From: Takakia lepidozioides
Taxonomy: Eukaryota > Plantae > Bryophyta
DNA: 64,000 nt
Direction of reading: 5' to 3'
NCBI GenBank assembly: GCA_030704615.1
Contig: CM060732.1
Location: 13,888,001-13,952,000 of the forward strand
Shown here: positions 452 to 64,000 of the stretch, piece by piece
Layout: every line of letters begins with the position of its first letter
Position numbering within the stretch: the stretch's first letter is position 1
Position numbers and translations under genes: made by a program
Notes under the pieces: model-generated
What the model was told of the DNA's origin: nothing
The model's database searches: none
What the model saw: the letters and a program-made list of their open reading frames with translations, nothing else

Positions 452-567
452 TTAAAATTCTATTAATCTTGAAAATCATCACTATCGTCGTCCTGTCCTT
501 GACTGTCCTGCTCCGCCTCCACCCCGTCATTGTCTTTCTCATCTCCAGCGGACTGCTCATTGGCCAG

Positions 568-9612: not shown

Positions 9613-10254
9613 GTCGTGGGGAGTCTTGGGACTCAGCACGGTCCATAGGGGCCGTGGTGAGTGGGCCAAGACTCACCGCGACTCATCACCGGGAGTCGAG
9701 GGTTTTCGTGGTGGTTCGCCATAAAATGGCATGGCTGGTTATGAAACCCCCGCGGACAGCTACAGAAGTATATATAAGGAGTAGTAACCCCGAGAACGGT
9801 GCAAACCCGTTGGTGACCAAAAACTAGTGAGTAAGCGAGCGAGCCGGAAAGCGACCAAAGAGTGGGGAGCTGTTCCGGACTGCTAGGAGTTGGTCGCCAA
9901 AAAAGACATGGGCTATTTGTGAGACCCCCGTCGACCCCTACAGAAGTATATATAGGAAGTAGTAACCCTGAGAACGGTGTTGCAAGTCCGTTAAGCGAGC
10001 AAAAGCTAGTGAGCAAGCAAATGAGCTGGAAAACGACGAAAGTGTAGGGAGCTATTCCGGACTGCCTACAACTAAAGGGAATTCCCACTGAGCCCGCGTT
10101 GTCGAGGGTCCCGTGGGGGAGCAAGGGGGACCGATGTCCCGGTGAGGAGTCGAAGCTCCAAGTTGGCCCGACGGTTAGTTTGGGAGTCAGGCGCGCGCAT
10201 CAAAGCGAGTAACTATGACTTGAAGGGGAGTTTACCGAAGTGAGGTGCGCGACA
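9611..10254 (+). mobile_element. LTR fragments: copy-B-type LTR piece (9611-9883) fused to the 3' end of a diverged LTR (9884-10254)
   Basis: 9611-9883 is nearly identical to 7441-7713. 9884-10254 is diverged and ends GCGCGACA. Confidence 0.88.
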
Positions 10255-32589: not shown

Positions 32590-33919
32590 CTTATGCGCAT
32601 CTTTTCTTGTTGAAGAAGTGCCTCAATCTGTTGTTGCACCAGATTTTCTTCAGCTTCTGATAGTCTATTTGCTGGTGTTCTTGTGGCAGGGAACCCTTGG
32701 GTATTGATTTCGTGTTCAACATCTGCAAAGTGCAATAAGTCTGCTTTGTTCAGGGCAAAACTGTACTGGTTCCTGTGGCACAACTCTATCATCTGCTACT
32801 TCTGTTCTGGAGTGAGTTCAGGAGAAAACTTGAGTTTGCTTCGTATACCTTCCCACCTTTGTTGTTCCTCCAGTGTTTGCATGTCTTCTTCCGTCCGAAT
32901 GTCATCTCTCCTATGGCATGCAAGTAAACCAGATGAGCTTCTTTCCTTTGCTGGTTTGTGACTTTTGTCCAATCTTCCAGTTCATCATCCGAGTTGGGAT
33001 TTGTACGGTTACCTCCATTCCAGATCTTGGTGTAGGCATCCTTGATAAAACCTTCCTTACTTCCTTGTAACTGGGGTCATCAAGCAGATCTGGGTGTTCA
33101 TTGTCTTGGAGGTCTTCCGCCCATATGTCTAGGAGGTAATCCTCCATTGCCTCTTGGTCTGAGTTGTAGCCTTGATCATCCTCTTCCACATCAGAGCCCT
33201 CAGTTGAGTGTGAACTCTCACTGTCGTTCATGTCCGATGCACAATTAGATAGCCCATCCTCATCCATTGGTGTGAATAAGCTTTGGCTGGCGTGTATACC
33301 TACTATCTGTTCCACTGCCATAACCTCTGTTTTGATCTGAGTGTCCTCGATCAATGGCTCCACAGCCAAGTTCTTGCAGAACTCGTGAAAGTTGCCAATC
33401 GTTGGCTTTAGGTGGTTCATGGTGTGAAGTGGGAAGTAAGCCACATTCAGACCAGGCCCATATCTTACTCTCAACGTTTCTGTTTCCATATCAATTACTG
33501 CCCTGAACTTCTTCAAGAAGTCCAGCCCGAGCAACATACTGTAAGTGTCCGTATCCACCACCATGAAAGTGATATTGTTAGTCAGTTTTCCAACAGTGAC
33601 CTTCAAATTGTCGAGCACACCCATTGCTGTTTCTACAGCACCTGAGGCCACCCTATACGACATGTCTCAATCTGTTAACACACAGCCCATGAATCCCAAA
33701 TCCCTTACTGTTGTTGCTTCTATCACGGAGATCATTGCCCCTGTGTCTATCTGGCCCATTACTTGGAAGTTTCCAATGGTTACCAGAGCATGCAAAGCAT
33801 TTACTTTGCCTGTGAGCATAAAAGATGGCTTCCATATCCTTGTTGCTAGTTTCAGGTGTTAGTTTTACCTCTTGGGCAGTAGGGTACGGTGGACCAAAAG
33901 AGACAGATTTTTCCTCCAT
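32590..33919 (-). mobile_element. Second Ty3/Gypsy family: degenerate aspartic protease, acidic linker and start of RT
   Basis: IDTGAMISVI near 33740; FMVVDTDTYSMLLGLDFL in ORF 32911-33663; HEINTQG...RLSEAEENLVQQQIEALL in ORF 32577-32792. Confidence 0.8.
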
Positions 33920-35574: not shown

Positions 35575-38500
35575 ATGACTAGTGGCAGGTCACAACGCGG
35601 CGGTGCGCACACGAGACCTGGGCCTAGAGAAAGGGCTAGACGCGCATTGAGAGATGAGGTACTTGAACGCGTCCGCCGATCTAGAGCGAGGAACAAAGAG
35701 TCACATGCCCAGAATGTTTCGCACACTGTAGGTGACTTGGAGCAAAACACGGAGGAAGCTGTAAGGGATCGAGAGATTAGAGGCCTGCCATACGATTGTG
35801 ACATGCATTTGTAACACGTTGAAAGTGTTCCCGGGACCTTCAAGCAAACGACACATCATGGAGAAGGTCATTTCGCACCCTTCACTCATCCCTGTGATGC
35901 CACTTGCTTTGCAAGATGGAAAGACCATTATTGCTCAACAACAGATCATCGATGGACTGACAAAATCGCTGGCTGAGATTAAAAACCCTAACACCGCAGG
36001 CAAATTAGCGAGCAAGCATGCGCTACTAACAGCAGTGGTTAACAATGGGTGTGGTTCCTCGTATAGATCTACGGCATCTCTGTTAGGTGTTCATCCCCGT
36101 AATATAAGCGCGGCAGTTGCACGCCGCGAGGATATGGAATCTGCTCGCGAAGGATTCATGTGGAGTTTGTCTATAAGGAAGACGAGACGCGATACAATTT
36201 CAGTTGCAACGAGGGATGTTGTGGTCTCTTGGTGGGTGTCCCAAACTCGAGTCAGTCCTAATGCAAAAGATGTCACTCGGAAGCGTCTCGCTGCGTTTCA
36301 GTACGATGTAAAGCCTACACTCTACTTGATGGAGCCTCAGGTACAACTCTACATGTCTTCTCACTGTATGTGGAATGTCTTTGAATTGTCTATGTTCTTA
36401 TGGAATGCTCGGAGGTTGACACTGACATGCCATGGACATCCCATGAGCTCTACAACAAGGTACATTGGAAATGTGGAGTCTTGTGGGTTTGAATGTGGAG
36501 TCCCCTGGATTCAATGTCAGGTTGTGGAGTGCCAGTCCATGATTTGTTTGTCGGTTGCAATTGCAGCGGAATGTTGTGGATTATTTGTGAAGTCTTGTGG
36601 AAACAATGACTGGTTTGTGGACTTGCGAGTTACTCTGCGTTGACCATGCCGCTATTCATGGACTCACCATAGACTTCTGTGGATAGCAGGACATGTTGTG
36701 GACTAGTAGACAATACTGCCTTAGTGCATATACAGTTTCATACTCTGCTAGCTCGTTGTAAGAATGTTTTTCATGACATTTTGGGATTGATAGGTGCCTT
36801 TCTTGTGCAGATGGATTTCTTTTTACGATTCCAAAGAGCACACCCTGACATCATAATGGGAAGCCGGTCATTTGATGCATTAAAACCATTCTTTGTAAAG
36901 AGAATGAAAAACAGGAATGTGTGTTGCTGCATTTATCATGTGGAAAATGGAAGAGTTGCGAGTGGGCTTCAACAACATGCGAGCCAAGTCAGGCCATTGT
37001 AATGGATCATGTGATTGTGAATGTGAATATATATGTCAGCCGGATGTTGTACAGGGCTGCAGAGGTGCTCTGTATACTTTTTCAAGGGTTACTCATATGT
37101 GGGAGTCAGTGGTATGCCCAAAAGATGAGTATAGTGATTGGCACAGGAAAGAGTGCATGTATGGAGAGTGCCAAGCTTGTGGTGTTGAAAACCTATCTCT
37201 GTGCCCTCTTGAGGATGATGATTCATCAGAGCACCTAGTGCAGTGGAGGCACTTCTCTTTACAAACAATCTTGACAAAGAAAGGAGAAGAAAGAAAGAAA
37301 CTCACCCTCCTCTACAAGCGGACTACACCTCACGAGCTTATTCGGTATTTGAAGCCTAAACTTCAGTTCTTCATTCGTCATAATTTTGTTGCTCAGTGGG
37401 AAGACAGACAGTTCAAGGAGTGCTTGAAGAATTTTCCTGCTGACGTGTTGGTTTCAGTGGTCGATTTTGCGGAAAATTACAGTTTTGAAATTCAGAATGA
37501 AGTGCAAAGCATGCACTGGTACCAGATTACAATCTTGGTCTTAATAACCTGGCGTCGAAATCCTAACCCAAATTTGAGTGGCCTTGGCTCTGATAGCTTG
37601 ATGGAATACCATTTCTTTATCTCGGACGACAAACACATGACAACTACTTTGTTCAACATTGCTTGCAGCTGCATTGGCAGCATGTGACCACTACCTTGTT
37701 TCGTCCATCACAACATTGGATATGGAGTGATGGGTGTTCTTCTCAATTCAAGTCCAAAGTGCCATGGTATTTTGTCAGCAGGTACCCTCATCTCACGGGG
37801 GGTTGCACTTTGCTTTGGAGCTTCTTTGGTACAGGGCACGGCAAGGGCCCTCATGATGGAGCAGGTGCAGTTGTCAAAAGATACCTACGTACTGCACAGC
37901 TAGATGTCTCAGGCCCGAAGCTGCAAAATGCGGAAGATGTTGTAAGATTTTTGAGAGAACGGTTGTCCTCAAGACCAGAGTCTTCCTACTGGCAGAGATC
38001 TGATGTCCGTCGAGTTTTCTGGGATGTAAAGGAAGAGGATATCAACCGTCGTTCACTGCATGACTGTGATGTTATCAAGGGAATCAAGAAACTACATTCA
38101 GTCAGATCTGTTGCCAGTGGTGATACTAACAAACTCATGATAAAAGGGTTGGCTTGCTTCTGTTGTTTCTGTATTGACTCAGCATGGAACAATTGTGAGA
38201 ATGCTGCATGGACTGGTGAATGGGAGTTGCAGATCTTGACCCCGAAGAACACCGCAAATGTCAGGCATGCCATGGAGAAAGATGCAGATGAGGATTGGGA
38301 CCAGTTTGGCATCAATGGTGATTATTTGGCATCCCTCATTAAAATTGGAGACAATTTCGCAGTCAATGCTGAGGAAAACAATGATGAACAGGTAGACTTT
38401 TACATCATTTGTTGTAGTCGGGCTCTCCATGCAGTGAAGAAGCCATTCACTGATGCATGGGGCACTTTGTTTGTAGAAGGAGACATGGTAATTGCAGGAA

Positions 38501-38718
38501 AGTATTACCAGAAGTGGGGGAGAACGGAAGACACGTATGTATTTCTGAAAAAATCACAAGTGGTCTTTCTGCACTCTGAACATGTGCGTGCCATCAAGTT
38601 TCCTATGCTGCCATGCGACTACAGGGTTGTAGGGAATGATCCGGTTTACAAATTGCCTGAATTCGCTGAAGAAGGGATAAGGGCTGCAATTGCAGCTTTG
38701 GATTCTGGCAACGACTAG
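35575..38718 (+). pseudogene. Decayed intron-containing DDD transposase, Sola2-like (intron 36341-36810; frameshifts near 35800, 36945 and 37635)
   Basis: Motifs VCCCIYH, C-rich CxxC, VVDFAENY, ISDD, WSDGCSSQFKS and FFGTGHGKGPHDGAGAVVKR, plus C-terminal CFCCFC. GT-AG intron in frame. The family assignment is from remembered motifs. Confidence 0.75.
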
Positions 38719-40964: not shown

Positions 40965-41844
40965 GGTTTGCCGACACATAATTCCGCAGAATTGTTTCAC
41001 CACGGAATTCACCTTTTCTGTTTGGCCGTCCGTTGTGGGTTGGAAGGATGTACTCCTCTTTAGCCTCGTCCCCATCTTCTTCCAAAGTGCCCTCCAGAAT
41101 TTTCTTGTAAACTTTGGATCGCGGTCCGAGACAATATCCTTCGGGAGTCCATGGTGCTGGAAGACGTGGGCGAAGTAAAGACGCCCCGTCTCCTCCGCCG
41201 TTGCCGTTTCCTTGGTGGGGATGAAATGACCCATTTTGCTGAACCTATCCACCACCACCACCATGATTGCATCAAATCCCTTTGACAGCAGCAAAGCGGT
41301 CATGAAATCCATTGAGACACTTTCCCAAGACCCCTCTGGAATCGGTAAAGGTAGTTACAGCCCCGCTTGCTTTTTGTACTCACTCCGGTTTTGTTGGCAT
41401 GTGGTGCATGTCTTAACATACTCATTGGCCTCCTCCCTCAGTTTGGGCCAGAAATACTCTTTCTTCAAGAGTGTCGCAGTGCGCTTGGCTCCGCCGTGGC
41501 CCGCAAGCGGGCCATCGTGACATTCTCTCAAGAGACTATCACTGAAGTCTCCCTTCGGCACGTAGAGACGCTTTTGCTTGTACCGGAGCAGTCCATTGTG
41601 CAAGTGGAACTACGACGTAACCCCTAGCCTCAAGTCCCGCATCACGGACTTCGTCAACTCATCCTTCCGATAAGCCTTCCGGATCTTCCTTTGCAGCTCC
41701 GTCTCACCTCTATACATCAACATGAGCTGTTGCTTTCTACTCAAAGCATCGGCCACCACATTGTCCCGTCCCGGTTTGTACTGGATATCAACGTCGAACA
41801 CTGCCAAAGTGTCTTGATACCTAATTTGTTTTGGGGACAACTTA
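40965..41844 (-). mobile_element. Diverged chromovirus copy: end of RNase H and N-terminal integrase
   Basis: ORFs 41610-41840, 41355-41603 and 40767-41312 match the integrase with premature stops. Homology ends near 40965. Confidence 0.9.
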
Positions 41845-42260
41845 TGTCGCGCACCTCACTTCGGTAAGCTCCCCCTCAAGTCATAGTTACTCGCTTTGAT
41901 GCGCGCGCCTCACTCCCAACCTGGCCGCCGGGCCAACTTGGAGCTTCGGCTGCTCACCGGGGCATAACGGTCCCCCTTTGTTCTCCCAAAGAACCCTCCA
42001 CCGATTTGGAACCAGCAGGAATTCCCTTTGGTAGTTGGCAGTCCGGAACAGCTCCCCACTCTTTGGTCGCTTTCCGGCTCGCTCGCTTACTCACTAGTTT
42101 TGGGTCACCAACGGGCTTGCACCATTCTCGGGGTTACTACTCCCTATATATACTTCTGTAGCTGTCCCCGGGGGTTTCACAACCAGCCATGCCATTTTAT
42201 GGCGAACCACCACGAAAACCCTCGACTCCCGGTGATGAGTCGCGGTGAGTCTTGGCCCAC
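41845..42260 (-). mobile_element. 3'-terminal 416 bp of a chromovirus LTR, nested in the diverged copy
   Basis: Begins TGTCGCGCACC on + and aligns to 568-985. Confidence 0.92.
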
Positions 42261-44624
42261 GGACTGGCCCCATGGGCCAGGCGGAAGTTGGAGGAGAAGC
42301 CACCCAAGACTTTGAACGAGGCAATTGAGAGGGCTGAATGTTTCTCGGATGTCCCTAGGGGTGAAAGACAAGGCCGTACGGAGCTGAACCACAAGAAGAT
42401 TCGGCGGAAAGGTGACTCCTTCCGACCGGAAAAGAAGTGGGATAGGCCACGCGGCGATAATGGCACGTGGAAATCGAAGGGAGGGCCTTCACACGTCAAG
42501 GCGGCACCCGGTGCTCCGAAAGGAAAAGCGGGTGGAGCGGCTTATGGCGGACAGAAGGCGACCTTTGATGGAGTGTGTTTCAATTGCGGGGAGCCCGGGC
42601 ACATGGCCAAGAAAAGCACGAAGCCCCGGCAATTGAACATGACTCGGGCGACCACGGAGCTGTCGGAAGATACCATCAGTCGCTTGGTGGAAGCGGTGGT
42701 CGCCAGGACTTGCAAGGTAGGCAAATTTTCTTGTGAGTTGTATCAGGAAACTGGCGCCTTACGAAAAGGGAGTCAGTTATTGTTCGTGGATGGGATAATA
42801 TCCGGAACTAATGTGTCGTTGTTGGTGGACACAGGAGCGTCGCACTCCTTCATGACACCGGCAACGGCACAAAAGCTGGGACTCCCGACAAGTGACGTGG
42901 GGGCCTCTATTGAGGTGCGTTCTGCCAAAGGAGAACACAGTTGGCGACAAGGTTGGCGATTTGATGTTCCTCTTCAACTGGGGAGTTGGGAGGGACGTGA
43001 GAACTTCACCATCTGCGAGATCGATGGAGTAGATCTCGTTTTAGGGATGACCTTTTTGAGCAAATCCGGAGCGGTCATAGATGGCCGCAAGAGAGTAGTC
43101 ACGCTGCCATGTGGGAATGGTGGCGAGGTTTTACGAGTGTCGGAAACGCCCAAATCCGTGGGAGGGCGAATAAACCTTCTGTCAGCAAGGGAGTGGGACG
43201 TGGAGGAGGCACACGAACCCCAGTTCTTGCTTTACATTAGAGAAGTGAAAAGAGAAGCGATGGGGAGCCGAGCCCAGATTGGATCAAGGGGATTTTGGAG
43301 AAATACCAGGATGTGATGCCGGAGGATTTACCAAGCGGCTTGCCCACGCGAAGAGGAGTTGACCACAAGATTGAGGTGATACCGGGATCGGAACCGCCTG
43401 CCAAGGCGCCCTACCGGTTGAGCCACAGAGAGTTGGTCGAGCTGAAGACTCAGTTCAAGGATCTAATGTCAAAGGGGTACATCCGGCCGAGTAAGTCACC
43501 TTACGGAGCCCCGGTGCTATTCGCAGACAAGAAGGATGGGACGCTGCGGATGTGTGTCGATTACAGGGCTCTGAATAAGGTGACTATCAAAAACCGGTAC
43601 CCTTTGCCAAGGATCGACGACCTCTTCGATCGGTTGGCAGGAGCGAAGTATTTCAGCCGGATCGACTTGCGCTCCGGCTATCACCAAATTCGGGTGGCGG
43701 AAGGAGATGAGGAGAAGACCGCGTGCAGGACAAGGTATGGTTCATATGAGTTCTTGGTGATGCCTTTTGGGCTCACCAATGCACCAGCGACATTTAGCAC
43801 GCTGATGAACAGCCTTTTTCAAGAGTGGTTGGATGACTTTGTGATCGTGTACATCGACGACATCTTGGTGTACTCGAAAACAAAGGAGGAGCACCTGGAG
43901 CACCTCAAAAGGGTATTCCAAAAATTGCGAGAAGGGAAGCTGTATGCCAAAGCTTCAAAGTGCGAATTCGGGGTCACAAAAGTGGAGTTCTTGGGGCATG
44001 TGATTACACAGGATGGGATCAAAATGGATGACAGAAATGTGAGGGCGATCTTGGACTGGGAGCCTCCGACTTCGGTCCCGGGAGTGCGATCCTTCCTAGG
44101 ACTCGCCTCCTATTACCGGAAGTATGTGAGAAATTTCGCCAAGATCGCGGGGCCGCTGTCGGACCTTCTGTGTAAATCCAAAGTCTGGGTATGGAACACA
44201 TTTTGTGGCCAAGCTTTTGCTGAATTGAAGCAGTGGATGGCGGAAGCTTCAGTCTTGAAAATCCCGGAGTTCGATTGTCCGTTTGAGATTCATACAGATG
44301 CATCGGACTTCGCGATTGGGGGTGTACTTATGCAAGATGGACGTCCAGTGGCTTACGAAAGTAAGAAACTGAATGAAGTGGAGCGACGGTGGCCGACGCA
44401 CGAAAAAGAGATGAAGGCGGTGGTGCATTGCCTTGAGCTCTGGCGCCACTATGTTGGTTCCAACCCAGTGAAGGTGTTCACGGACAATGTCACGGTGAAG
44501 TATTTTGCCACGCAGCCCAAGTTGTCCCCAAAACAACTTAGGTGGCAAGATACTTTGGCAGTGTTCGACGTGGATATCCAGTACAAACCGGGACGGGACA
44601 ATGTGGTGGCCGATGCTTTAAGTA
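42261..44624 (+). mobile_element. Chromovirus copy C: C-terminal gag, zinc knuckle, protease, RT and RNase H
   Basis: CFNCGEPGH, LVDTGASHSF, YIDD, DAS...E...TDN...ADALS. Homology ends at GCTTTAAGTA (44624). Confidence 0.95.
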
Positions 44625-46870
44625 CCGCGCCAACTGAAGCCGAGCACTCTGAGCGCATGTTTCTTCCGCTTTTTGTAGATGTGTCGTCCTCTTCTTCGCG
44701 CCAGAACATTTTCTCTGTGCTTCTGCATGTGCGATTGCAAATGATTGTTGTTGCTTTCATGCTTATCTGTAGGAACAAAGTTGTTTTTGCTTTCATGCTT
44801 ATCCCTACTCTCCCTGTCACAACTGTTGATTTGATTTGGATGGTGCCGCCGTGTTGGGGATGACAGAGTGAAGATGATCGGGACACGGTGGTGTATCCTC
44901 GACTGCTCCAAGTCGACGAGCGGCGACTCCAACCCATCGACTGCAGTCTGACAGTCATCGACAGCAGTCTGCGGATTCTGATATTCGCATTCTCGGGTCG
45001 CCTACGTGGGCACTGGAGGGCAATCCAAAACTAGTTCCTTTTGTTGGCGGAAGAGAGGCGCTGGAGCGGGAGTACGCCCGAATAGGCATTTGGGAGATTG
45101 CCTCTGCAGCAGTCGGCATGGCAGGTGCAGGGCGACGGAAACAGGCAGCAGATCCGCCCATCCATGAGGTCGATGCACAGGCAGGGGAGCCCGCCCACAC
45201 GAAGAAGAAAATAAAGGTGAAGCACATGCAATCCCTAGCCAAAGAGCAGGCACACGTTGCTGAGGGGGGAGTGAACAGGACACCCACCAAACACCAAGAG
45301 GGTGTGACTTCCCCGGGGTCGAAGGTGGTGGACCTGGAGGCCTCAACTACAGCCACGCCATCTAAGAAACAAAAGGCCTGAGAGAGGGCAAAAGACAGGG
45401 TAAGAGAACATGGCAGAGAGTGTAATGCCAATCTAGTTCGTCGGGGTGTACTTGGGCTATGTTCTCCATCCATGCGGCAAGCCGATGGTTCCCGTCCCAT
45501 ACGAAGAACATTTTTTCGGACAAGTGCTGGAAAAGAGGATCGTTAACAATCAATTTCTCGAACTCGCCGTTTCGCATTTCTCGATTTTTAGCTGTGGAAT
45601 TAGAAGACCATGCTTTGTAATTGCTATGTGCTTTGCTGACAGACCAGAATTGACCAAGATTCACTCATGGCACATACATTTTCATTCAGAAATCAAGCAG
45701 CTTCCCTGTGCCATATGGGGAATATACAGGCTTCGATAATCTTCTGTTAATGTTATTTGCAATTCACTGCCAGTATGCTGGGACGTGTCCTTTGTCGTAT
45801 GGATTGCTGTTTGCACAAGGTGCAGTATGCAAATGCTGGAATGTGCAGTAGGACCCTTCCCACTGGGACACAGAACTAGCAATCTTGTAAAGGCATCACA
45901 TTTGCAGAACAGTAACAATGTATTTGTAGCAAATTGGAGTCTTCTCATAAAGGTGGACGAAATTCACATGTAGCCATGGCGATGCGGCACCACCAAGTGT
46001 ATAATTCCTCACAAAAAAATAGGGTGCAAGAAGATGAATGTAATATAATTGCCACTAACTCCTTCCCGAATGTGGAATGTCAAGCAGTCCGACCAGTATC
46101 CTGCCGTAGGGCCTTGTGCAGCTCGTTGAAACTCAGTGTTGGAGCATGGATGAAGACGTCCACTGCGGATATGCAACTCATGCGCTTCATAAAAATGTAA
46201 TAAAGGTGTTTGCAGGGGACGTATGCTGCATTCCTCGATTCCATAACAAGGAAGTCCTCACAGTTGCAAGCTGGGTACTGTGAAACCGTGAGACAAAACT
46301 GACCGGGTGCACTCGAATCGTATGTCAGTGCTGCCGAGGCAAAGGCGCGCCTCAAGTACAAGTCTCGGATGGTGAAGTACGTGGCCATTGTTGATCCCGC
46401 ACTCGGTGACGACTTTCTTGTGGAGGTGGGGAAGCACTACTCACGGGCTCTTAAGCCAACAATGACAATCGAGAAACTACATCGTCTAGCCACAGCATGT
46501 GTGGATGCAACTGAGAAGGTTAATCATTCTGAACCAACTTGGACTCTTCATGCAACAATGTGTTCCCTTACTTTATTTCACTTACTAATATCCACGTTGG
46601 TTGGACAGATCCGGTGGCTCCAAATCTGGAATGGGTCTCAAAGTATTCGGGACATGTGGAGCTTCCCAAAACCTGACAAACTATCCGACCCCACATTCGA
46701 CCTCTGGATGAACCGCATGACATGGTGGTTTCAGGTTGTTTTCAAGCTTTTTTGGTGCTTCCCCTCTTGTATCACGTAGATTTCTGGCATTTCTTGAAGA
46801 ATGCTGACTGATGGGGACTGTCCGCAGGTCACCACAAATGCGCAAGAGCAGTTGGACACCCAAGCCCACC
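44625..46870. other. Non-retroelement mosaic containing a ParB/Srx-like fragment (-, ~45400-45580), a SWIM zinc finger (-, 46080-46360) and plus-strand coding remnants; probably DNA-transposon derived
   Basis: FFVWDGNHRLAAW; CNCEDF...CKHL; coding-like pieces at ~44960-45381 (+) and 46369-46779 (+, apparent intron). Confidence 0.55.
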
Positions 46871-48883
46871 AGATAACCTTGAACCAACCGTGCGCCCCAA
46901 TCACTACAATTGGGTCCGCCTTGGAATGCTGGCCTGAGGTACGGGAACACGCCGAAGCCGCACTACGACTTCGTCCCGAGGTTACACGATTATAGTACAT
47001 GAACGGAAGCACGTAGCTTCCGCGTTAGCCCGCACTACAAGGCAACCCCCTTGGTAGTGCAGTTATAGTACGCGCACGCGCCAGGTGCGCACTAGCACGT
47101 GAACTCCCAAAGAAGGCGCAAGTTTCCTTGCCCCTTGGATGGGAGTCACCCGATTTTGGCTCTTCGCAAACACACGATTACCCAATTTACCTCTCCCACT
47201 TTTGTAAGCTAGCATGCATTCTACACACTAGCCAACCACACCATGCATCACCATTCCAAACACAATAGGACGCACAATATTTGGAACCCATTTCTTTATA
47301 ACAAATTTTTGTACAATACAAGTTTTTGCAATCGGATTCCTGAGCTAGCTAAACCGGGCTAAGCATGCATTTCCTCCCCCACGCTCCAAGGTTGATGTCC
47401 CCATCAACGCTTCTTCCGCTTTTGAGGTCGCCCTTCGAAAGCTGCAACCGCCTCGGATGCGTTTCCCATTTCTGAGGCACGCACCCAAGATGCCTCCACA
47501 TGATGATAGCCCTTCCATTTGACGAGATACTCTGTTTCTCGGTTCCTGAACCTCCTCGACTTAAGTATTGCCTCCACCTCGTACTCAGGTTCATTTTCAT
47601 GATCCAACAGCATAGGTGGCGGACGCAACACTTGATGCCGATTCGGACGCGCTTCATCTTTGAAGTAAGGCTTCAAAGGGAGAAAAGGAATACTGGGTGC
47701 ACCTTGCTATTTGCCGGCAGCTCCAATTCATACACATCCTCATTCATAACCTTCCGAATGCGAAAGGGTCCCGCATACGGAGGCACGAACTTCGGACTCA
47801 CTTCCGGAGGTAGTCGGAAATTCTTGATGTTCAACCAGACCTCTGTGCCTGCCTAAAACTTCACTTCCCTCCACTTCCGATTCGCCTGCCTTTCATACCG
47901 TTTCCTAGCTTTGGCAATATTGTACTTTGCGAGCTTCAACAAACGCTCGCGTTCTTCCAGTACCGCCGCTACTGCCGGTTCCTCAACGTCCTGGGCGGCC
48001 CAACTTGTCGGCACCAGAGGTGCTTTTCCATAGACCAACACGAAAGGGGAAACTCCCGTTGCGGAGTGTTCTGTGTTATTATAACAGAACTCTGCCGCGT
48101 CTAAGTGTTCCATCCAGTCTGATTGGTCTGCCGACACGTAATTCCGCAAGAATTGCTTCACTACGGAATTTACTCTTTCCGTTTGGCCGTCTGTCGTAGG
48201 TCGGAAGGCGGTGCTCATCTTCAGCCTCGTCCCCATCTTTTTCCAAAGTGCTCTCCAGAATTTACTCGTAAACTTTGGATCGCGGTCCGAGACAATATCC
48301 TTCGGGACTCCATGATGCTTTAAGACGTGGCGAAGAAAAGTTGCCCTGTCTCCTGCGCCGTTGTCGTCTCCTTGGTGGGGATGAAATGGCCCATTTTACT
48401 GAACCTATCTACCACCACCATGATTGCATCAAATCCTTTTGACAGCGGCATAGCAGTCATGAAATCCATCGAGACGCTTTCCCAAGTCCCCTCTGGAATC
48501 GGCAAGGGTTGTAACAGCCCTGCTTGCTTTTTGTACTCGCTCCGGTTTTGTTGGCATGTGGTGCATGTCTTGACATACTCCTCTGCCTCCTCCCTCAGTT
48601 TGGGCCAGAAATACTCTTTCTTCAAGAGTGCCGCAGTGCGCTTGGCTCCGCCGTGGCCCGCAAGCGGACTATCATGGCATTTTCTCAAGAGACTATCCCT
48701 GATCCCTCCCTTCGGCACGTAGAGACGCTTTTGCTTATACCGGAGCAGTCCATTTTGCAAGTGGAACTGCGATTTAACCCCCATCCTCAAGTCCTTCATG
48801 ACGGACTTCGCCAGCTCATCCTTCCGGCAAGCCTTCCGGATCTTCCTTTGGAGTGCCGTCTTGTACACCAACAAGAGCTGCTG
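46871..48883 (-). mobile_element. Inverted segment of copy C: integrase, chromodomain, PPT and 5' ~500 bp of the 3' LTR (46871-47369)
   Basis: ORFs 48320-48874, 47853-48236 and 47404-47676. LTR start TGCATGC at 47369. Confidence 0.94.
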
Positions 48884-49975
48884 TCAAAGAGGGTTCCAGG
48901 TGAACCCTTGCTCAAGGTGATGCCAAAAGCGGCATCATGAGCGATCGCAAGCAATGTTGTTGCAGTAAGGCGATTCGATCTTCGGGGAGGATCGTTCCTT
49001 GGCCTTGAAGTAGAGCAAGAAGAGTGCACTGGGAGGAGCTGGAGAGGCTCCACCCTTGGCCGCGACTTGGAGGAAGTCGGCCAAACTAGCTAGTGGAGAG
49101 TAGAGTCAAGTGTGGGGTTTGGTTCCTTACCATGGGACGCCATGGTATAGAAACAAACTCCTTGATGTGGGACGCCACAACTTGGATGTTCGTTTCTACA
49201 AAATGGACAAGTCGATGAGGACATCGACTCCCTGTGTTGTAGGGTGTGTGTCGCGGCCCTTTGCCTTGAGGGCAGGGGGGGTCGGGACACATGAGGGGCT
49301 GCCCCTGTGGTGGGGCAGCGGCAGCGATAGGTATGGGGGGCTGAGGCACCCTTGAGTGCCCAAGGCACTCAGGGAAGCGGAGGCGCTCACTAGGTGGAGC
49401 CCGACACACCGGGTTGCGGTGGGGGTGGCTCCACAAGGGGTGGTGGTAGCTTAGTGGGACTTAGTGGGGGTGGCATAGGACTCACCATGGGGGCGGAGAC
49501 CTCGTGGTGGGAGTCGTGGGGAGTCTTGGGACTCATCACGGTCCATAGGGGCCGTGGTGAGCGGGCCAAGACTCACCGCGACTCACCACCGGGAATCGAG
49601 GGTCTTCGTGGTGGTTCGCCATAAATGGCATGGCTAGTTGTGAAACCCCCGCGGACAGCTACAGAAGTATATATAGGGAGTAGTAACCCCGAGAACGGTG
49701 CAAGCCCGTTGGTGACCAAAAACTAGTGAGTAAGCGAGCGAGCCGGAAAGCGACCAAAGAGTGGGGAGCTGTTCCGGACTGCCATCTACCAAAGGGAATT
49801 CTCCTAGTCCCAATTAGGTGGAGGGTTCTAGAGGGAAGCAAAAGGGGACCGTTATGTCCCGGTGAGCAGCCGAAGCTCCAAGTTGGCCCGGGCGGCCAGG
49901 TTGGGAGTCAGGCGCGCGCATCAAAGCGAGTAACTATGACTTGAAGGGGAGTTTACCGAATTGAGGTGCGTGACA
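48884..49975 (+). mobile_element. Remaining ~1.1 kb of the copy C 3' LTR
   Basis: Aligns to 6815-7904 and ends GGTGCGTGACA at 49975. Confidence 0.93.
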
Positions 49976-50734: not shown

Positions 50735-53700
50735 CGGCGCCGAATTTCCATCCGAGGCCCGTTGGATGAAGTCGTCTCGGGGGGAGAGGCCGACACCTGG
50801 CCGACAGAGAACATCCCCCGGATGGAAAAACGGCGCCGAATTTCCATCCGAGGCCCGTTGGATGAAGTCGTCTCGGGGGGAGAGGCCGACACCTGACCGA
50901 CTGAGATCATCCCCCGGATAGAAATTCGGCGCCGAATTTCCATCCGAGGCCCGTTGGATGAAGTCGTCTCGGGGGGAGAGGCCGACACCTGGCCGACAGA
51001 GAACATCCCCCGGATGGAAATTTGGCGCCGAATTTCCATCCGAGGCCCGTTGGATGAAGTCGTCTCGGGGGGAGAGGCCGACACCTGGCCCACAGAGAAT
51101 ATCCCCCGGATGGAAATTCGGCGCCGAATTTCCATCCGAGGCCCGTTGGATGAAGTCGTCTCGGGGGGAGACGCCGACACATGGCCGACAGAGAACATCC
51201 CTCGGATGGAAAAACAACGCCGAATTTCCATCGGAGGCCCGTTGGATGAAGTCGTATCGGGGGGAGACGCCGAGACCTGGCCAACAGCGAACATCCCCCG
51301 GATGGAAAAACGGCGCCGAATTTCCATCCGAGGCACATTGGATGAAGTCGTCTCGGGGGGAGAGGCCGACACCTGGCCGACTGAGATCATCCACCGGATG
51401 GAAATTCGGCGCCGAATTTCCATCCGAGGCCCGTGGGATGAAGTCGTCTCGGGGGGAGACGCCGACACATGGCCGACAGAGAACATCCCCCGGATGCAAA
51501 AACGTCGCCGAATTTCCGTCCGCGGCCCGTTGGATGAAGTCGTCTCGGGGGGAGACGCTGACACCTGGCCGACAGAGAACATCCCCCGGATGGAAATTCG
51601 GCGCCGAATTTCCATCCGAGGCCCCTTGGATGATGTCGTCTCGGGGGGAGAGGTCGACACCTGGCCGACTGAGAACATCCCCCGGATGGAAATTCGGCGT
51701 CGAATTTCCATCCGAGGCCCGTTGGATGAAGTCGTCTCGGGGGGAGAGGCCGACACCTGGCGAGCAGAGACCATCCCCCGGATGGAAAAACGGCGCCGAA
51801 TTTCCATTCGAGGCCTGTTGGATGAAGTCGTCTCGGGGTCAGAGGCCGACACTTGGCCGACTGAGATCATCCCCCGGATGGAAATTCAGCGCCGAATTTC
51901 CATCCGAGGCCCGTTGGATGAAGTCGTCTCGGGGGGAGGCACCGACACATGGCCGACAGGGGACATCCCCCGGATGGAAAAACGGCGCCGAATTTCAATT
52001 TGAGGCGGGTTGGATGAAGTCGTCTCGGGGGGAGACGCCGACACCTGGCCGACAGAGAACATCCCCCGGATGGAAATTCGGCGCCGAATTTCCATCCGAG
52101 GCCCGTTGGATGAAGTCGTCTCGGGGGGAGAGGCCGACACCTGGCCGACAGAGAACATCCCCGGATGGAAATTGGCGCCGAATTTCCATCCGAGGCCCGT
52201 TGGATGAAGTCGTCTCGGGGGGAGAGGCCGACACCTGGCCCACAGAGAATATCCCCCGGATGGAAATTCGGCGCCGAATTTCCATCCGAGGCCTGTTGGA
52301 TGAAGTCGTCTCGGGGGGAGACGCCGACACATGGCCGACAGAGAACATCCCCCGGATGGAAAAACAACGCCGAATTTCCATCGGAGGCCCGTTGGATGAA
52401 GTCGTATCGGGGGGAGACGCCGAGACTCCATGGCCGACAGAGAACATCCCCCGGATGGAAAAACGGCGCCGAATTTCCATCGGAGGCCCGTTGGATGAAG
52501 TCGTCTCGGGGAGGCCGAAGGCCGACACACTCCCCCCCCCGGATGGAAAAACGGCGCCGAATTTCCATCCGAGGCCCGTTGGATGAAGTCGTCTCGGGGG
52601 AGAGGCCGACACCTGGCCACGAGATCATCCCCCGGATGGAAATTCAGAATTTCCATCCGAGGCCCGTTGGATGAAGTCGTCTCGGGGGGAGACGCCGACA
52701 CCTGGCCGACAGAGAACATCCCCCGGATGAAAAACGGCGCCGAATTTCCATCCGAGGCCCGTTGGATGAAGTCGTCTCGGGGGAGAGGCCGACACCTGGC
52801 CGACTGAGAATCATCCCCCGGATGGAAAATTCGGCGCCGAATTTTCCATCCGAGGCCGTTGGATGAAGTCGTCTCGGGGGGAGAGGCCGACACTGGCCGA
52901 CAGAACATCCCCGGATGGAAAAACGGCGCCGAATTTCCATCCGAGCCCGTTGGATGAAGTCGTCTCGGGGGGAGACGCTGACACTGGCCGACAGAGAACA
53001 TCCCCGGATGGAAATTCGGCGCCGAATTTCCATCCGAGGCCCGATGAAGTCGTCTCGGGGAGAGCCGACATGGCCAGAACCCCCCGGATCGCCGAATTTC
53101 CATCCGAGGCCCGTTGGATGAAGTCGTCTCGGGGGGAGAGCCGACACCTGGCGACAGAGACATCCCCCGGATGGAAAACCGGGGTTGGATGAAGTCGTCT
53201 CGGGGAGAGGCCGGCCGATCATCCCCGGATCCGAATTTCCGAGGATGAAGTCGTCTCGGGGGAGACCGACAGTCGTCTCTTGGCCGACAAAGAACATCCC
53301 CCAGATGGAAGAAGCCGAATTTCCGTTGGAGAAGTCGTCTCGGGTGAGAGGCCGACACCTGGCCGACTGAGATCATCCCCGGATGGAAATTCGGCGCCGA
53401 ATTTCCATCCGAGGCCCGTTGGATGAAGTCGTCTCGGGGGAGACGCCGACACATGGCCGACAGAGGACATCCCCCGGATGGAAAAACGGAACCGAATTTC
53501 CATCCGAGGCCCGTTGGATGAAGTCGTCTCCGGGGGAGACGCCGACACCTGGCCGACAGAGAACATCCCCCGGATGGAAAAACGGCGCCGAATTTCCATC
53601 CGAGGCCCGTTGGATGAAGTCGTCTCGGGGTGAGAGGCCGACACCTGGCCGACTGAGATCATCCCCCGAATGGAAATTCGGCACCGAATTTCCATCCGAG

Positions 53701-56700
53701 GCCCGTTGGATGAAGTCGTCTCGGGGGGAGACGCCGACACCTAGCCGACAAAGAATATCCCCTGGATGGGAAAACAGCACCGAATTTCCATTTGAGGCCT
53801 GTTGGATGAAGTCGTCTCGGGGTGAGAGGCCGACACCTGGCCGACTGAGATCATCCCCCGGATGGAAATTCGGTGCCGAATTTCCATCCGAGGCCCGTTG
53901 GATGAAGTCGTCTCGGGGGGAGACGCCCACACATGGCCGACAGAGAACATCCCCGGATGGAAAAACGGCGCCGAATTTCCATCCGAGGCCCGTTGGATGA
54001 AGTCGTCTCGGGGGAGAGGATGACACCTGGCCGACTGAGAACATCGCCCGGAAGGAAATTCGGCGCCGAATTTCCATCCGAGGCCCGTTGGATGAAGTCG
54101 TCTCGGGGGAGACGCCGACGCATGGCCGACAGAGAATATCCCCCGGATGGAAAAACGACGCCGAATTTGCATCGGAGGCCCGTTGGATGAAGTCGTCTCA
54201 GGGGGAGACGCCGACACCTGGCCGACAAAGAACATCGGCCTCTCACCCGAGACGACTTCATCCAACGGCCCCCGGATGGAAAAACGGCGCCGAATTTCCA
54301 TCCGAGGCCCGTTGGATGAAGTCGTCTCGGGGTGAGAGGCCGACACCTGGCCAACTGAGATCATCCCCCGGATGGAAATTCAGTGTCGAATTTCCATCCA
54401 AGGCCCGTTGGATGAAGTCGTCTCGGGGGGAGACGCCGACACATGGCCGACAGAGAACATCCCCCGGATGGAAAAACGGCGCCGAATTTCCATCCGACGC
54501 CTGTGGGATGAAGTTGTCTCGGGGTCAGAGGCCGACACCTGGCCGACTGAGATCATCCCCCGGATGGAAATTCGGCGCCGAATTTCAATCCGAGGCCTGT
54601 TGGATGAAGTCGTCTCGGGGGGAGACGCCGACACATGGCCGACAGAGAACATCCCCCGGATGGAAAAACGGCGCCGAATTTCCATATGAGCCCCCTTGGA
54701 TGAAGTCGTCTCGGGGGGAGACGCTGACACGTGGCCGACAGAGAACATCCCCTGGATGGAAAAACAACGCCGAATTTCCATCCGCGGCCCGTTGGATGAA
54801 GTCGTCTCGGGGTGAGAGACCGACACCTGGCCGATAGAGAACATCCCCCGGATGGAAAAACGACGCGGAATTTCCATCCGAGGCCCGTTGGATGAAGTCG
54901 TCTCGGGGGGAGAGGCCGACACCTGGCCGACTGAGATCATCCCCCGGATGGAAAAACGACGCCCAATTTCCATCCGAGGCCCGTTGGATGAAGTCGTCTC
55001 GGGGAGAGACGCCGACACCTAGCCGATAAAGAACATCCCCTGGATGAAAAAACGGCACCGAATTTCCATTTGAGGCCCGTTGCATGAAGTCGTCTCGGGG
55101 TGAGAGGCCGACACCTGGCTGACTGAGATCATCCCCCGGATGGAAATTCGGCACCGAATTTTCATCCGAGGCCCGTTCGATGAAGTCGTCTCGGGGGAGA
55201 CGCCCACACATGGCCGACAGAGAACATCCCCCGGATGGAAAAACGGCGCCGAATTTCCATCCGAGGCCCGTTGGATGAAGTCGTCTCGGGGGGAGAGGCC
55301 GACACCTGGCCGACACTGAGAACATCGCCCGGATGGAAATTCGGCGCCGAATTTCCATCCGAGGCCCGTTGGATGAAGTCGTCTCGGGGGGAGACGCCGA
55401 CGCATGGCCGACAGAGAATATCCCCCGGATGGAAAACGACGCCGAATTTGCATCGGAGGCCCGTTGGATGAAGTCGTCTCAGGGGGAGACGCCGACACCT
55501 GGCCGACAGAGAACATCCCCCGGATGGAAAAACGGCGGCGAATTTCCATCCGAGGCCCGTTGGATGAAGTCGTCTCGGGGTGAGAGGCCGACACCTGGCC
55601 GACTGAGATCATCCCCCGGATGGAAATTCAGTGTCGAATTTGCATCGGAGGCCCGTTGGATGAAGTCGTCTCGGGGGAGACGCCGACACATGGCCGACAG
55701 AGAACATCCCCCGGATGGAAAAACGGCGCCGAATTTCCATCCGACGCCCGTTGGATGAAGTCGTCTTGGGGGGACGCCGACACCTGGCCGACAGAGAACA
55801 TCCCCCAGATGGAAAAAACGGCGCCGAATTTCCATCCGAGGCCCGTTGGATGAAGTCGTCTCGGGTGGAGAGGCCGACACCTGGCCGACTGAGATCATCC
55901 CCCGGATGGAAATTCGGCGCCAATTTTCCATCCGAGGCCGGCGGATGAAGTCGTCTCGGGGGGAGAGGTCGACTTCTGGCCGACAAAGAACATCCCCGGA
56001 TGGAAAAACGGCGCCGAATTTCCATATGAGGCCCTTGATGAAGTCGTCTCGGGGGAGACGCTGACACGTGGCCGACAGAGAACATCCCTTGGATGGAAAA
56101 ACGGCGCCGAATTTCCATCCGCGGCTCGTTGGATGAAGTCGTCTCGGGGGGAGACGCCCACACATGGCCGACAGAGAACATCCCCCGGATGGAAAAACGG
56201 CGCCGAATTTCCATCCGACGCCCGTTGGATGAAGTCGTCTTGGGGGGGGCCGCCGACACCTGGCCGACAGAAAACATCCCCCGGATGGAAAAACGGCGCC
56301 GAATTTCCATCCGAGGCCCGTTGGATGAAGTCGTCTCGGTGGAGAGGCCGACACCTGGCCGACTGAGATCATCCCCCGGATGGGAAATTCGGCGCCAATT
56401 TTCCATCCGAGCCGGCCGGATGAAGTCGTCTCGGGGGGAGTGGTCGACTTCTGGCCGACAAAGAACATCCCCCGGATGGAAAAACGGCGCCGAATTTCCA
56501 TATGAGGCCCCTTGGATGAAGTCGTCTCGGGGGGAGACGCTGACACGTGGCCGACAGAGAACATCCCTTGGATGGAAAAACGGCGCCAAATTTCCATCCG
56601 CGGCCCGTTGGATGAAGTCGTCTCGGGGTGAGAGGCCGACACCTGGCCGACAGAGAACATCCCCCGGATGGAAAAACGACGCGGAATTCCCATCCGAGGC

Positions 56701-59700
56701 CCGTTGGATGAAGACGTCTCGGGGGGAGAGGCCGACACCTGGCCGACTGAGATCATCCCCCGGATGGAAAAATGACGCCCAATTTCCATCCGAGGCCCGT
56801 TGGATGAAGTCGTCTCGGGGGGAGACGCCGACACCTCGCCGACAAAGAACATCCCCTGGATGGGAAAACGGCGCGAATTTCCATTTGAGGCCCGTTGGAT
56901 GAAGTCGTCTTGGGGTGAGAGGCCGACACCTGGCCGACTGAGATCATCCCCCGGATGGAAATTCGGCACCGAATTTCCATCCGAGGCCCGTTGGATGAAG
57001 TCGTCTCGGGGGAGACGCCCCACACATGGCCGACAGAGAATATCCCCCGGATGGAAAAACGACGCCGAATTTGCATCGGAGGCCCGTTGGATGAAGTCGT
57101 CTCAGGGGGAGAGGCCGACACCTGGCCGACAGAGAACATCCCCCGGGTGGAAAAACGGCGGCGAATTTCCATCCGAGGCCCGTTGGATGAAGTCGTCTCG
57201 GGGTGAGAGGCCGACACCTGGCCGACTGAGATCATCCCCCGGATGGAAATTCAGTGTCGAATTTCCATCCGAGGCCCGTTGGATGAAGTCGTCTCGGGGG
57301 GAGACGCCGACACATGGCCGACAGAGAACATCCCCCGGATGGAAAAACGGCGCCGAATTTCCATCCGACGCCCGTTGGATGAAGTCGTCTCGGGGAGAGG
57401 CCGACACCTGGCCGACTGAGATCATCCCCCGGATGGAAATTCGGCGCCGAATTTCCATCCGAGGCCTGTTGGATGAAGTCGTCTCGGGGGAGACGCCGAC
57501 ACATGGCCGACAGAGAACATCCCCCGGATGGAAAAACGGCGCCGAATTTCCATATGAGGCCTGTTGGATGAAGTCGTCTTGGGGGGGGACGCCGACACCT
57601 GGCCGACAGAGAACATCCCCCAGATGGAAAAACGGCGCCGAATTTCCATCCGAGGCCCGTTGGATGAAGTCGTCTCGGGGGAGAGGCCGACACCTGGCCG
57701 ACTGAGATCATCCCCCGGATGGAAATTCGGCGCCAATTTCCATCCGAGCCGGCCGGATGAAGTCGTCTCGGGGGAGAGGTCGACTGGCCGACAAAGAACA
57801 TCCCCGGATGGAAAAACGGCGCCGAATTTCCATATGAGGCCCCTTGGATGAAGTCGTCTCGGGGGGAGACGGACACGGCCGACAGAGAACATCCCATGGA
57901 AAAACGGCGCCGAATTTCCATCCGCGGCCCGTTGGATGAAGTCGTCTCGGGGGGAGACGCCGACAATGGCCGACAGAGAACATCCCCCGGATGGAAAAAC
58001 GGCGCCGAATTTCCATCCGACGCCCGTTGGATGAAGTCGTCTTGGGGGGACGCCGACACCTGGCCGACAGAAAACATCCCCCGGATGGAAAAACGGCGCC
58101 GAATTTCCATCCGAGGCCCGTTGGATGAAGTCGTCTCGGGGGGAGAGGCCGACACCTGGCCGACTGAGATCATCCCCCGGATGGAAATTCGGCGCCAATT
58201 TCCATCCGAGCCGGCCGGATGAAGTCGTCTCGGGGGAGAGGTCGACTTCTGGCCGACAAAGAACATCCCCCGGATGGAAAAAACGGCGCCGAATTTCCAT
58301 ATGAGGCCCCTTGGATGAAGTCGTCTCGGGGGGAGACGCTGACACTGGCCGACAGAGAACATCCCTTGGATGAAAAAACGGCGCCAATTTCCATCCGCGG
58401 CCCGTTGGATGAAGTCGTCTCGGGGAGAGGCCGACACCTGGCCGACAGAGAACATCCCCCGGATGGAAAAACGACGCGAATTCCCATCCGAGGCCCGTTG
58501 GATGAAGTCGTCTCGGAGGGAGAGGCCGACACCTGGCCGACTGAGATCATCCCCGGATGGAAAATGACGCCCAATTTCCATCCGAGGCCCGTTGGATGAA
58601 GTCGTCTCGGGGGGAGACGCCGACACCTCGCCGACAAAAACATCCCCTGGATGGGAAAACGGGGCGGAATTTCCATTTGAGGCCCGTTGGATGAAGTCGT
58701 CTTGGGGTGAGAGGCCGACACCTGGCCGACTGAGATCATCCCCCGGATGGAAATTCGGCCGAATTTCCATCCGAGGCCCGTTGGATGAAGTCGTCTCGGG
58801 GGAGACGCCCACACATGGCCGACAGAGAATATCCCCCGGATGGAAAAACGACGCCGAATTTGCATCGGAGGCCCGTTGATGAAGTCGTCTCAGGGGAGAC
58901 GCCGACACCTGGCCGACAGAGAACATCCCCCGGATGGAAAAACGGCGCCGAATTTCCATCCGACGCCCGTTGGATGAAGTCGTCTCGGGGTCAGAGGCCG
59001 ACACCTGGCCGACTGAGATCATCCCCCGGATGGAAATTCGGCGCCGAATTTCCATCCGAGGCCGTTGGATGACGTCGTCTCGGGGGGAGACGCCGACACA
59101 TGGCCGACAGAGAACATCCCCCGGATGGAAAAACGGCGCCGAATTTCCACATGAGGCCTGTTGGATGAAGTCGTCTCGGGGGGAGACGCCGACACATGGC
59201 CGACAGAGAACATGCCCCGGATGGAAAAACGGCGCCGAATTTCCATGAGGCCCTTGGATGAAGTCGTCTCGGGGGGAGACACACGTGGCCGACAGAGAAC
59301 ATCCCCTGGATGGAAAAACGGTGCCGAATTTCCATCCGCGGCCCGTTGGATGAAGTCGTCTCGGGGTGAGAGGCCGACACCTGGCCGACAGAGAACATCC
59401 CCCGGATGGAAAAACGACGCGAATTCCATCCGAGGCCCGTTGGATGAAGTCGTCTCGGGGGAGAGGCCGACACCTGGCCGACTGAGATCATCCCCCGGAT
59501 GGAAAAACGACGCCAATTTCCAACGAGGCCCGTTGGATGAAGTCGTCTCGGGGGGAGACGCCGACACCTAGCCGACAAAGAACATCCCCTGGATGGGAAA
59601 ACGGCGCCGAATTTCCATTTGAGGCCCGTTGGATGAAGTCGTCTCGGGGTGAGAGGCCGACACCTGGCCGACTTAGATCATCCCCCGGATGGAAATTCGG

Positions 59701-62700: not shown

Positions 62701-64000
62701 ACAGAGAATATCCCCGGATGGAAAAACGACGCCGAATTTGCATCGGAGGGCCCGTTGGATGAAGTCGTCTCAGGGGGAGACCCGACACCTGGCCGACAAG
62801 AACATCCCCCGGATGGAAAACGGCGGCGAATTCCATCCCGAGGCCCGTGGATGAAGTCGTCTCGGGGTGAGAGGCCCGACACCTGGCCGACTGAGATCAT
62901 CCCCCGATGGAATTCATTGTCGAATTTCCATCGCGAGGCCCGTTGGATGAAGTCGTCTCGGGGGAGACGCCGACACATGGCCGACAGAGAACATCCCCCG
63001 GATGGAAAAAACGGCGCCGAATTTTCCATCCGAGCCCGTTGGATGAAGTCCGTCTCGGGGGGCCGACACCTGGCCGACGACATCCCCGATGGAAATTCGG
63101 CGCCGAATTTCCATCCGAGATGAAGTCGTCTCGGGGGGAGACGCCGACACATGGCCGACAGAGAACGGAATGAGAAAGATTTGGAAAAACGGCGCGAATT
63201 TCCGTATGAGGCCCCTTGGATGAAGTCGTCTCGGGGGGAGACGCTGACACGTGGCCGACAGAGAACATCCCCTGGATGGAAAAACGGTGCCGAATTTCCA
63301 TCCGCGCCCGTTGGATGAAGTCGTCTCGGGGTGAGAGGCCGACACCTGGCCGACAGAGAACATCCCCCGGATGGAAAACGACGCGGAATTCCCATCCGAG
63401 GCCCGTTGGATGAAGTCGTCTCGGGGGGAGAGGCCGACACCTGGCCGACTGAGATCATCCCCGGATGGAAAAACGATGCCCAATTTCCATCCGAGGCCCG
63501 TTGGATGAAGTCGTCTCGGGGGGAGACGCCGGCACCTCCGACAAAGAACATCCCCTGGATGGGAAAACGGCGCCGAATTTCCATTTGAGGCCCGTTGGAT
63601 GAAGTCGTCTGGGGTGAGAGGCCGACACCTGGCCCTGAGATCATCCCCCGGATGGAAAATTCGGCACCGAATTTCCATCCGAGGCCCGTTGGATGAAGTC
63701 GTCTCGGGGGGAGACGCCCACACATGGCCGACAGAGAACATCCCCCGGATGGAAAAAGGCGCCGAATTTCCATCCGAGGCCCGTTTGGATGAAGTCGTCT
63801 CGGGGGGAGAGGCCGACACCTGGCCGACTGAGAACATCGCCCGGATGGAAATTCGGCGCCGAATTTCCATCCGAGGCCCGTTGGATGAAGTCGTCTCGGG
63901 GGAGACGCCGACGCATGGCCGACAGAGAATATCCCCCGGATGGAAAAACGACGCCGAATTTGCATCGGAGGCCCGTTGGATGAAGTCGTCTCAGGGGGAG
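50735..64000. repeat. 96-bp GC-rich tandem satellite, ~138 copies, running off the window
   Basis: Monomer CGGCGCCGAATTTCCATCCGAGGCCCGTTGGATGAAGTCGTCTCGGGGGGAGAGGCCGACACCTGGCCGACAGAGAACATCCCCCGGATGGAAAAA at 50735, 50831, 50927 and onward. The 32-aa periodicity in the ORF track agrees. Confidence 0.98.

Follow-up and report, generated by a model that had tools for sequence, protein, structure and literature searches.

Neighbouring fragments of a decayed retroelement may be remnants of different copies, or they may be parts of one copy that was cut and rejoined. Which of the two applies is the question raised by positions 42261-49975 of a stretch of 64,000 nucleotides from Takakia lepidozioides (Bryophyta; assembly GCA_030704615.1, contig CM060732.1, positions 13,888,001 to 13,952,000 of the forward strand), hereafter the window, in which coordinates are counted from the first letter. 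Three pieces of an element that reads as a Ty3/gypsy chromovirus were found there, the middle one inverted and separated from the first by DNA unrelated to the element. A preliminary description had reconstructed one element from these pieces, and had proposed that a 2.0-kb fragment was excised, flipped and rejoined together with 2.2 kb of foreign DNA. The breakpoints were reciprocal, with small stretches lost and nothing duplicated; the integrated element was probably broken and its ends then joined, with DNA captured from elsewhere, which would have given both the inversion and the insert.

Reciprocal breakpoints of the rearranged copy

Piece A (42261-44624, +) carried the C-terminal part of gag with its zinc knuckle, the protease, the reverse transcriptase and RNase H, and its last bases were ..GCTTTAAGTA (..AAGTA). 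Piece B was inverted (46871-48883, -) and covered the integrase, with an H2C2 zinc domain and a decayed core, the chromodomain, the 3' untranslated part and the start of the long terminal repeat (LTR), to about 125 bp; in the element sense it started with CAGCAGCT at 48883 and ended with TTATCT at 46871. Piece C (48884-49975, +) was the remaining 3' LTR, which ran from TCAAAGAGGG, with TCAAAG as first bases at 48884, to the terminal ..GTGACA. Between A and the inverted B lay an insert of 2,246 bp unrelated to the element (44625-46870). The RNase H end of A met the insert at the first junction (J1, 44624-44625), the insert met the LTR-side end of B at the second (J2, 46870-46871), and at the third (J3, 48883-48884) the integrase-side end of B stood directly on the LTR at TCAAAG, with no filler. 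All three junctions were abrupt and non-homologous, and at J3 a microhomology of 1 bp (G) was possible.

The native readings were taken from a collinear reference, copy 1 (567-5531, -), which had the reverse transcriptase at one end and the LTR terminus at the other. Where RNase H meets the integrase in pol, copy 1 read GCTTTAAGTA-GAAAG-CAGTAGCT, and copy 3 (40965-41843, -) had an equal arrangement at this site. The native LTR reading, TTATCT-TCCTAG-TCAAAGAGGG, was present in copy 1 and in another copy of the window, copy 2, and a more divergent LTR at 8000-8060 had the same layout with two base differences. GAAAG was thus missing at the pol cut, as seen at J1, and TCCTAG (5-6 bp) at the LTR cut, as seen at J2; the total loss over both cuts was 11 bp, divided 5+6 or 6+5, as the G at 48883 fits either side. 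Both losses had been claimed in the preliminary description, and all of its coordinates and motifs proved exact on direct reading against the copies in the window. The same holds for the element end that it had placed at 49975, which matched the LTR terminus ..GTGACA and was a true terminus, with ...GACA recurring at six LTR ends within the window.

In BLAST the three pieces were collinear on copy 1, with identities of 94.6% for A (42777-44624 against 5531-3691), 94.1-94.5% for B (against 1662-3685) and 92.4% for C. The LTR of copy 2 (6814-7904) was 95.3% identical to C, and that of copy 1 was 92.5% identical. Every fragment of the family was then placed on a common coordinate line, with the primer-binding site as 1 and the LTR at about 5022-6241, for which copy 1, the gag part of A and a 5' part at 8749-9612 were kept as separate references. 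On this line A occupied 761-3117, B 3123-5146 (inverted) and C 5152-6241, without overlap. The chance that both physical neighbours of B would fit its ends within 10 bp was about 2e-5.

Private substitutions, counted in three-way alignments, amounted to 2.9% in A, 2.0% in B and 2.6% in C, and B and C were each nearer to copy 2 than to copy 1. Similar private divergence and a common affinity of B and C to copy 2 are as expected for a single copy, and the reading of A, B and C as reciprocal products of one copy is supported by the sequence. The preliminary description had named single-nucleotide polymorphisms as a check on whether the pieces came from different copies, and no such sign was seen. 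Its reconstruction of "one element" holds in that the pieces are reciprocal and fit a single copy; this copy is decayed, and the pieces represent no more than its 3' three quarters.

As a separate observation on piece B, the private substitutions in 46871-48263 were strongly strand-asymmetric, with 12 G>A against 1 C>T on the element sense strand (binomial p ~0.003). No strand bias of private substitutions occurred in A or C.

The assignment to the chromoviruses was made from Pfam domains. Those of A were zf-CCHC, gag-asp_proteas, RVT_1 and RT_RNaseH; those of B were Integrase_H2C2 and Chromo (PF00385, E=4e-13, 47404-47676, -), the chromodomain lying C-terminal to the integrase. Because of these domains the element is classified as a Ty3/gypsy chromovirus. 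The order protease, reverse transcriptase, RNase H and integrase on one strand was confirmed by the collinear copy 1, and in the rearranged copy it holds only once the inversion is allowed for. The nearest protein relatives were metagenome sequences (about 72% identity), with angiosperm gypsy elements at 57-60%.

Of the full element, which would measure about 7.5 kb, A, B and C together cover about 5.5 kb; what is lacking is the 5' LTR, the primer-binding site and approximately the first 760 bp of gag. In a sister copy a tRNA-iMet-type primer-binding site (TGGTATCAGAGC) was seen at 8751-8762, behind an LTR end. At least 15 stop codons were counted in every frame of B, and a frame break was located near 43300 in A. 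As judged from its sequence the rearranged copy is dead, and the repeat is probably silenced. The 5' edge of A (42260|42261) was a further breakpoint, onto an inverted LTR-end fragment (41845-42260, -) of a different LTR variant, which was of copy 1 type. That this fragment could be the element's own inverted 5' LTR was considered and rejected, as its terminal block was 92.4% identical to copy 1 and 87.6% to C.

The inserted DNA and the probable mechanism of rearrangement

The insert is foreign to the element. No similarity between it and the rest of the window was found, even at word size 7, so the 2.2 kb of foreign DNA named in the preliminary description was borne out as 2,246 bp without a match in the element or the window. 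From contig depth and loose contig ends (at 45662 and 46291) the insert was a mosaic. Low-copy DNA made up 44736-45655 and 46392-46575, and 45662-46291 was part of a further abundant repeat, of which the other copies had different flanks on both sides. The low-copy DNA also occurred in the organism's own sequencing run (X1), with 0-2 differences. In addition, neither terminal inverted repeats nor a target duplication was seen in the sequence at the insert ends, so the insert is not, on this reading, a canonical transposon insertion.

Two open reading frames (ORFs) of the insert gave leads by motifs spotted by eye and by atlas feature scores only. The ORF at 46080-46388 (-) had a C-x-C...C-x-H motif and an atlas feature likeness to SWIM of 0.90, and the ORF at 45362-45664 (-) contained VWDGNHR and had a weak atlas likeness to ParB_N/sulfiredoxin (0.93, with few features in common). 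Pfam returned no match on the insert ORFs, even at E<=10, and supported neither the SWIM nor the ParB_N reading. An exact look-up of the ORFs across J1 and J2 returned no records.

The origin held to be probable is breakage of the element after integration. The integrated chromovirus DNA would have been broken twice, once at the RNase H/integrase boundary of pol and once within the 3' LTR, away from the LTR ends and apparently some 125 bp in (an LTR start was visible at one place alone, 7905, and was possibly trimmed there). The 2.0-kb segment between the breaks would then have been rejoined in reverse by non-homologous end joining, with about 5 bp trimmed at each cut. On the J3 side the ends would have been joined directly, with 0-1 bp of microhomology, and the opposite side would have taken up the 2,246 bp of captured DNA. 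The inversion of piece B in place is supported, and so is the conservative character of the rearrangement, whose small losses and lack of duplication are more readily explained by breakage and end joining than by replicative template switching. Inverted duplications flanking piece B, the mark of a staggered-break inversion, were not present, and the pieces did not overlap in element coordinates. Judged from the scars alone, the repair pathway would be non-homologous end joining, and the breaks appear to have been made in the chromosome and not before integration.

The view that a 2.0-kb fragment was flipped and rejoined by cutting thus agrees with the reciprocal breakpoints, and the preference for end joining over template switching agrees with the small losses and the lack of duplication, both as first described. 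The excision, flipping and rejoining with capture in one event, also proposed there, stood as far as the inversion in place and the foreign DNA are concerned; the single event could not be distinguished from two steps. A two-step history, in which the 2.2 kb first entered the LTR and B was then inverted together with the insert, fits equally well. For this, one of the inversion breaks would have to fall only a few bp from the insert edge, so the one-event history, with two breaks and fragment capture together, is slightly preferred.

Some observations weigh against breakage and end joining in the chromosome as the origin of the locus. Parts of the stretch occurred in seven public sequencing runs from four studies, all as short Logan contigs, and none of the contigs listed bridged J1, J2 or J3, so that the arrangement is given by the assembly alone. 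Microhomology could be judged at J3 only. The two break sites (44610-44630 and 48875-48895, with native counterparts in copy 1 at 3680-3700 and 1650-1670) had an imperfect inverted 14-mer in common, CTTTAAGTAGAAAG against CTTTGACTAGGAAG, with 11/14 matches. If not due to chance, it would be a weak indication of a homology-assisted or sequence-directed process; the match was found post hoc, its length being chosen after the match was seen, and a score of 11/14 is reached by about 3% of site pairs drawn at random from the element. The pol break site was also a small palindrome (GCTTT-AAGTAG-AAAGC). A scan of metagenomes with the 20-base J3 junction gave a single match, which had no other similarity to the window and was set aside as a chance match.

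The rival explanations differ in how they deal with these data. An assembly artefact, in which the locus would really be collinear or different and the inversion and insert would be due to a chimeric read or to a misassembled route through a very high-copy repeat beside a satellite, is unlikely. It is favoured by the unbridged junctions, by the extreme abundance of the family (summed contig depth 1e5-1e6, against ~1e2 for the low-copy part of the insert) and by a satellite array of at least 13 kb that lies only 760 bp from the locus. In the contigs the native junctions of other copies were seen (runs X7 and X6; three other studies), and the loose contig ends at 46871 and 48883 spelled the native continuation. 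However, overlap-based misassembly switches copies in shared sequence, so that its chimeras are collinear; three abrupt, non-homologous junctions that are reciprocal to the base and have lost 5-6 bp are not among its products. The low-copy parts of the insert were present in run X1 as stated above, and the nearby rearranged pieces of 200-400 bp (7902-9883) are too small for path errors. That A, B and C are truncated pieces without connection, each from a different copy, brought side by side by chance, is scarcely conceivable: although fragments of this family abound in the window, the double reciprocity at base level has only the minute chance given above, the pieces have similar private divergence, and B and C are equal in their affinity to copy 2.

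Replication-based template switching, by fork stalling or microhomology-mediated break-induced replication between short inverted homologies, with the 2.2 kb copied in, is decidedly unlikely. The inverted 14-mer would suit it, as would a microhomology of about 6 bp (CAAAGG) at a neighbouring junction (8564-8566), and a templated copy would account for the long insert. Yet nothing was duplicated here, the pieces were strictly non-overlapping with a net loss, and copy gains are typical of such mechanisms; the 14-mer itself is subject to the post hoc limit already given. Very unlikely is an origin before integration, in the DNA copy of the element, by strand-transfer errors of the reverse transcriptase or by self-integration. 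Self-integration inverts segments, and Ty3/gypsy integrases cut with a stagger of about 5 bp, so that the products of autointegration known from retroviral and retrotransposon DNA resemble this locus in their inverted internal segment and in the scale of about 5 bp at the target, which is also that of the losses. But in self-integration it is LTR termini that become joined to an internal target, which is thereby duplicated, whereas neither junction here was at an LTR terminus, the LTR break was about 125 bp downstream of the LTR start at 7905, and bases were lost. The product also contained 2.2 kb of non-element DNA, had no 5' LTR and ended on its 5' side at yet another breakpoint. Breakage in the chromosome followed by end joining is retained as the probable origin.

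Other rearranged fragments in the window

Further pairs of reciprocal ends were identified in the window. A fragment with reverse transcriptase and RNase H (1-451, +) ended in ..TTTGCCA, and copy 3 (-) started with AAGTTG at 41843; this pair, on opposite strands and 41 kb apart, had lost 8 bp (CGCAGCCC). The 451/41843 pair may be the trace of an inversion of about 41 kb (452-41844); such an inversion would have divided a single old element and moved the two repeat nests apart. Its right-hand junction was only 1 bp away from the LTR terminus at 41845, a position that random breakage does not account for.

In 7902-9883 pieces of LTR were cut and reordered. A piece at 8033-8283 (+) was followed by an inverted one at 8335-8566 and then by 8564-8748, after which the primer-binding site and gag extended to 9612; an LTR piece at 9611-9883 came after gag. 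The ends at 9883 and 8564 were a reciprocal pair with 7-8 bp lost, and the pair formed by 8283 and the inverted 8335-8566 had lost 17 bp and gained 51 bp of filler. The piece 8564-8748 is probably copy 2's own 5' LTR, because its sequence was 99.5% identical to the 3' LTR of copy 2 (7721-7904). Staggered-break models that would link 9509-9883 with 42038-42364 by duplications were rejected, as the orientations did not fit and the identity of 97-99% there is normal for this conserved block.

Altogether five near-reciprocal end pairs were observed in the window, against 0.45 expected (P=1.3e-4), so conservative cut-and-rejoin is recurrent in these two repeat nests. The preliminary description had suggested that a peak near 5 in the number of bases lost at reciprocal breakpoints would point to a specific nuclease or an integrase-like stagger. 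This found no support, since the other reciprocal pairs had lost 7-8, 8 and 17 bp, in a small sample of five end pairs from this window. As the LTR break was not at the LTR end and the losses were not clustered at 5 bp, nothing speaks for a special nuclease.

At 5531 copy 1 (-, cut off in the protease/reverse transcriptase region) stood head to head against copy 2 (+, beginning inside the integrase), and the two arms had the sequence from integrase to LTR in common, with 93.8% identity. Copy 2 was without about 115 bp of 3' untranslated region (at 6564/6565) that was present in copy 1 (1906-2020) and in B (47116-47229). The satellite next to the rearranged element was a tandem array of 96-bp units at 50735-64000, with about 138 copies, 82-85% matches, a GC content of 0.60 and a strong skew of A over T. 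It had an interruption near 54237-54268 and continued past the window end. In the middle of the window, a set of ORFs like those of mobile elements (32911-33663, -, and 36917-38718, +) included an ORF like a retroviral-type aspartic protease and two long adjacent ORFs. For an exon of a flanking gene (15997-16584) the best named relative was from Sphagnum magellanicum, with 70%, by which the genome most likely belongs to a bryophyte-like land plant.

Relation to known rearrangements and meaning

The event is of a known kind and not a new mechanism. Two simultaneous double-strand breaks in plants are described as leading to a deletion or, less often, to an inversion (PMC8316200, citing Schmidt, Pacher & Puchta 2019). 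Such inversions by non-homologous end joining (PMC8316200) are similar to the present one in the two breaks, the reversed rejoining, the small deletions, the microhomology of 0-1 bp and the lack of any need for homology. They differ in that the breaks here were spontaneous, one junction had 2.2 kb of extra DNA, and the pathway is read from scars. Deletions and filler insertions are features of end joining in plants (Gorbunova & Levy 1997, as cited in PMC11712536), and according to the long-read study itself the inserted sequences were mostly from transposons and from sequences that its authors abbreviated "IR", with structural variants enriched in heterochromatin (PMC11712536).

The insert at J1 and J2 resembles the filler or captured DNA of plant end-joining junctions in being unrelated and partly repeat-derived, with a small deletion at the junction. 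It is unlike such filler in its size of 2.2 kb, and copying and the capture of a free fragment are here indistinguishable. A length of 2.2 kb is long for filler DNA. The 5' inversions that arise by twin priming in LINE elements also invert part of a retroelement and lose a few bases at the inversion junction; however, twin priming belongs to the target-primed reverse transcription of non-LTR elements, whereas here an LTR element is concerned and the inversion is of an internal part.

A wider possibility is that the inversion was no isolated accident but a single scar among those left by a clustered process, in which chromovirus nests beside satellite arrays were locally shattered and randomly re-ligated. 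This is rather unlikely. Such a process may have been one chromothripsis-like event, or recurrent breakage directed at such chromatin; if true, it would account for the five reciprocal end pairs in 64 kb, including the possible 41-kb inversion. The window is like chromothripsis-like shattering in having several conservative, reciprocal and randomly oriented joins with small losses inside a few kb. It is unlike it in that the joins are equally explicable as events accumulated over time, in DNA presumed to be under little selection.

The event is without function, being damage in a dead repeat beside a satellite array. The locus is a cleanly readable case of dead heterochromatic repeats being rearranged in the course of break repair, and each of its two cuts can be placed to the base. 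It has a value for calibration, as reciprocity at base level separates conservative cut-and-rejoin from independent truncation and from copying, and as the coincidence of 5 bp fails to generalise even inside this window. A genome-wide excess of small conservative inversions over other plant genomes, if true, would bear on double-strand-break repair, or on assembly quality, in this lineage.

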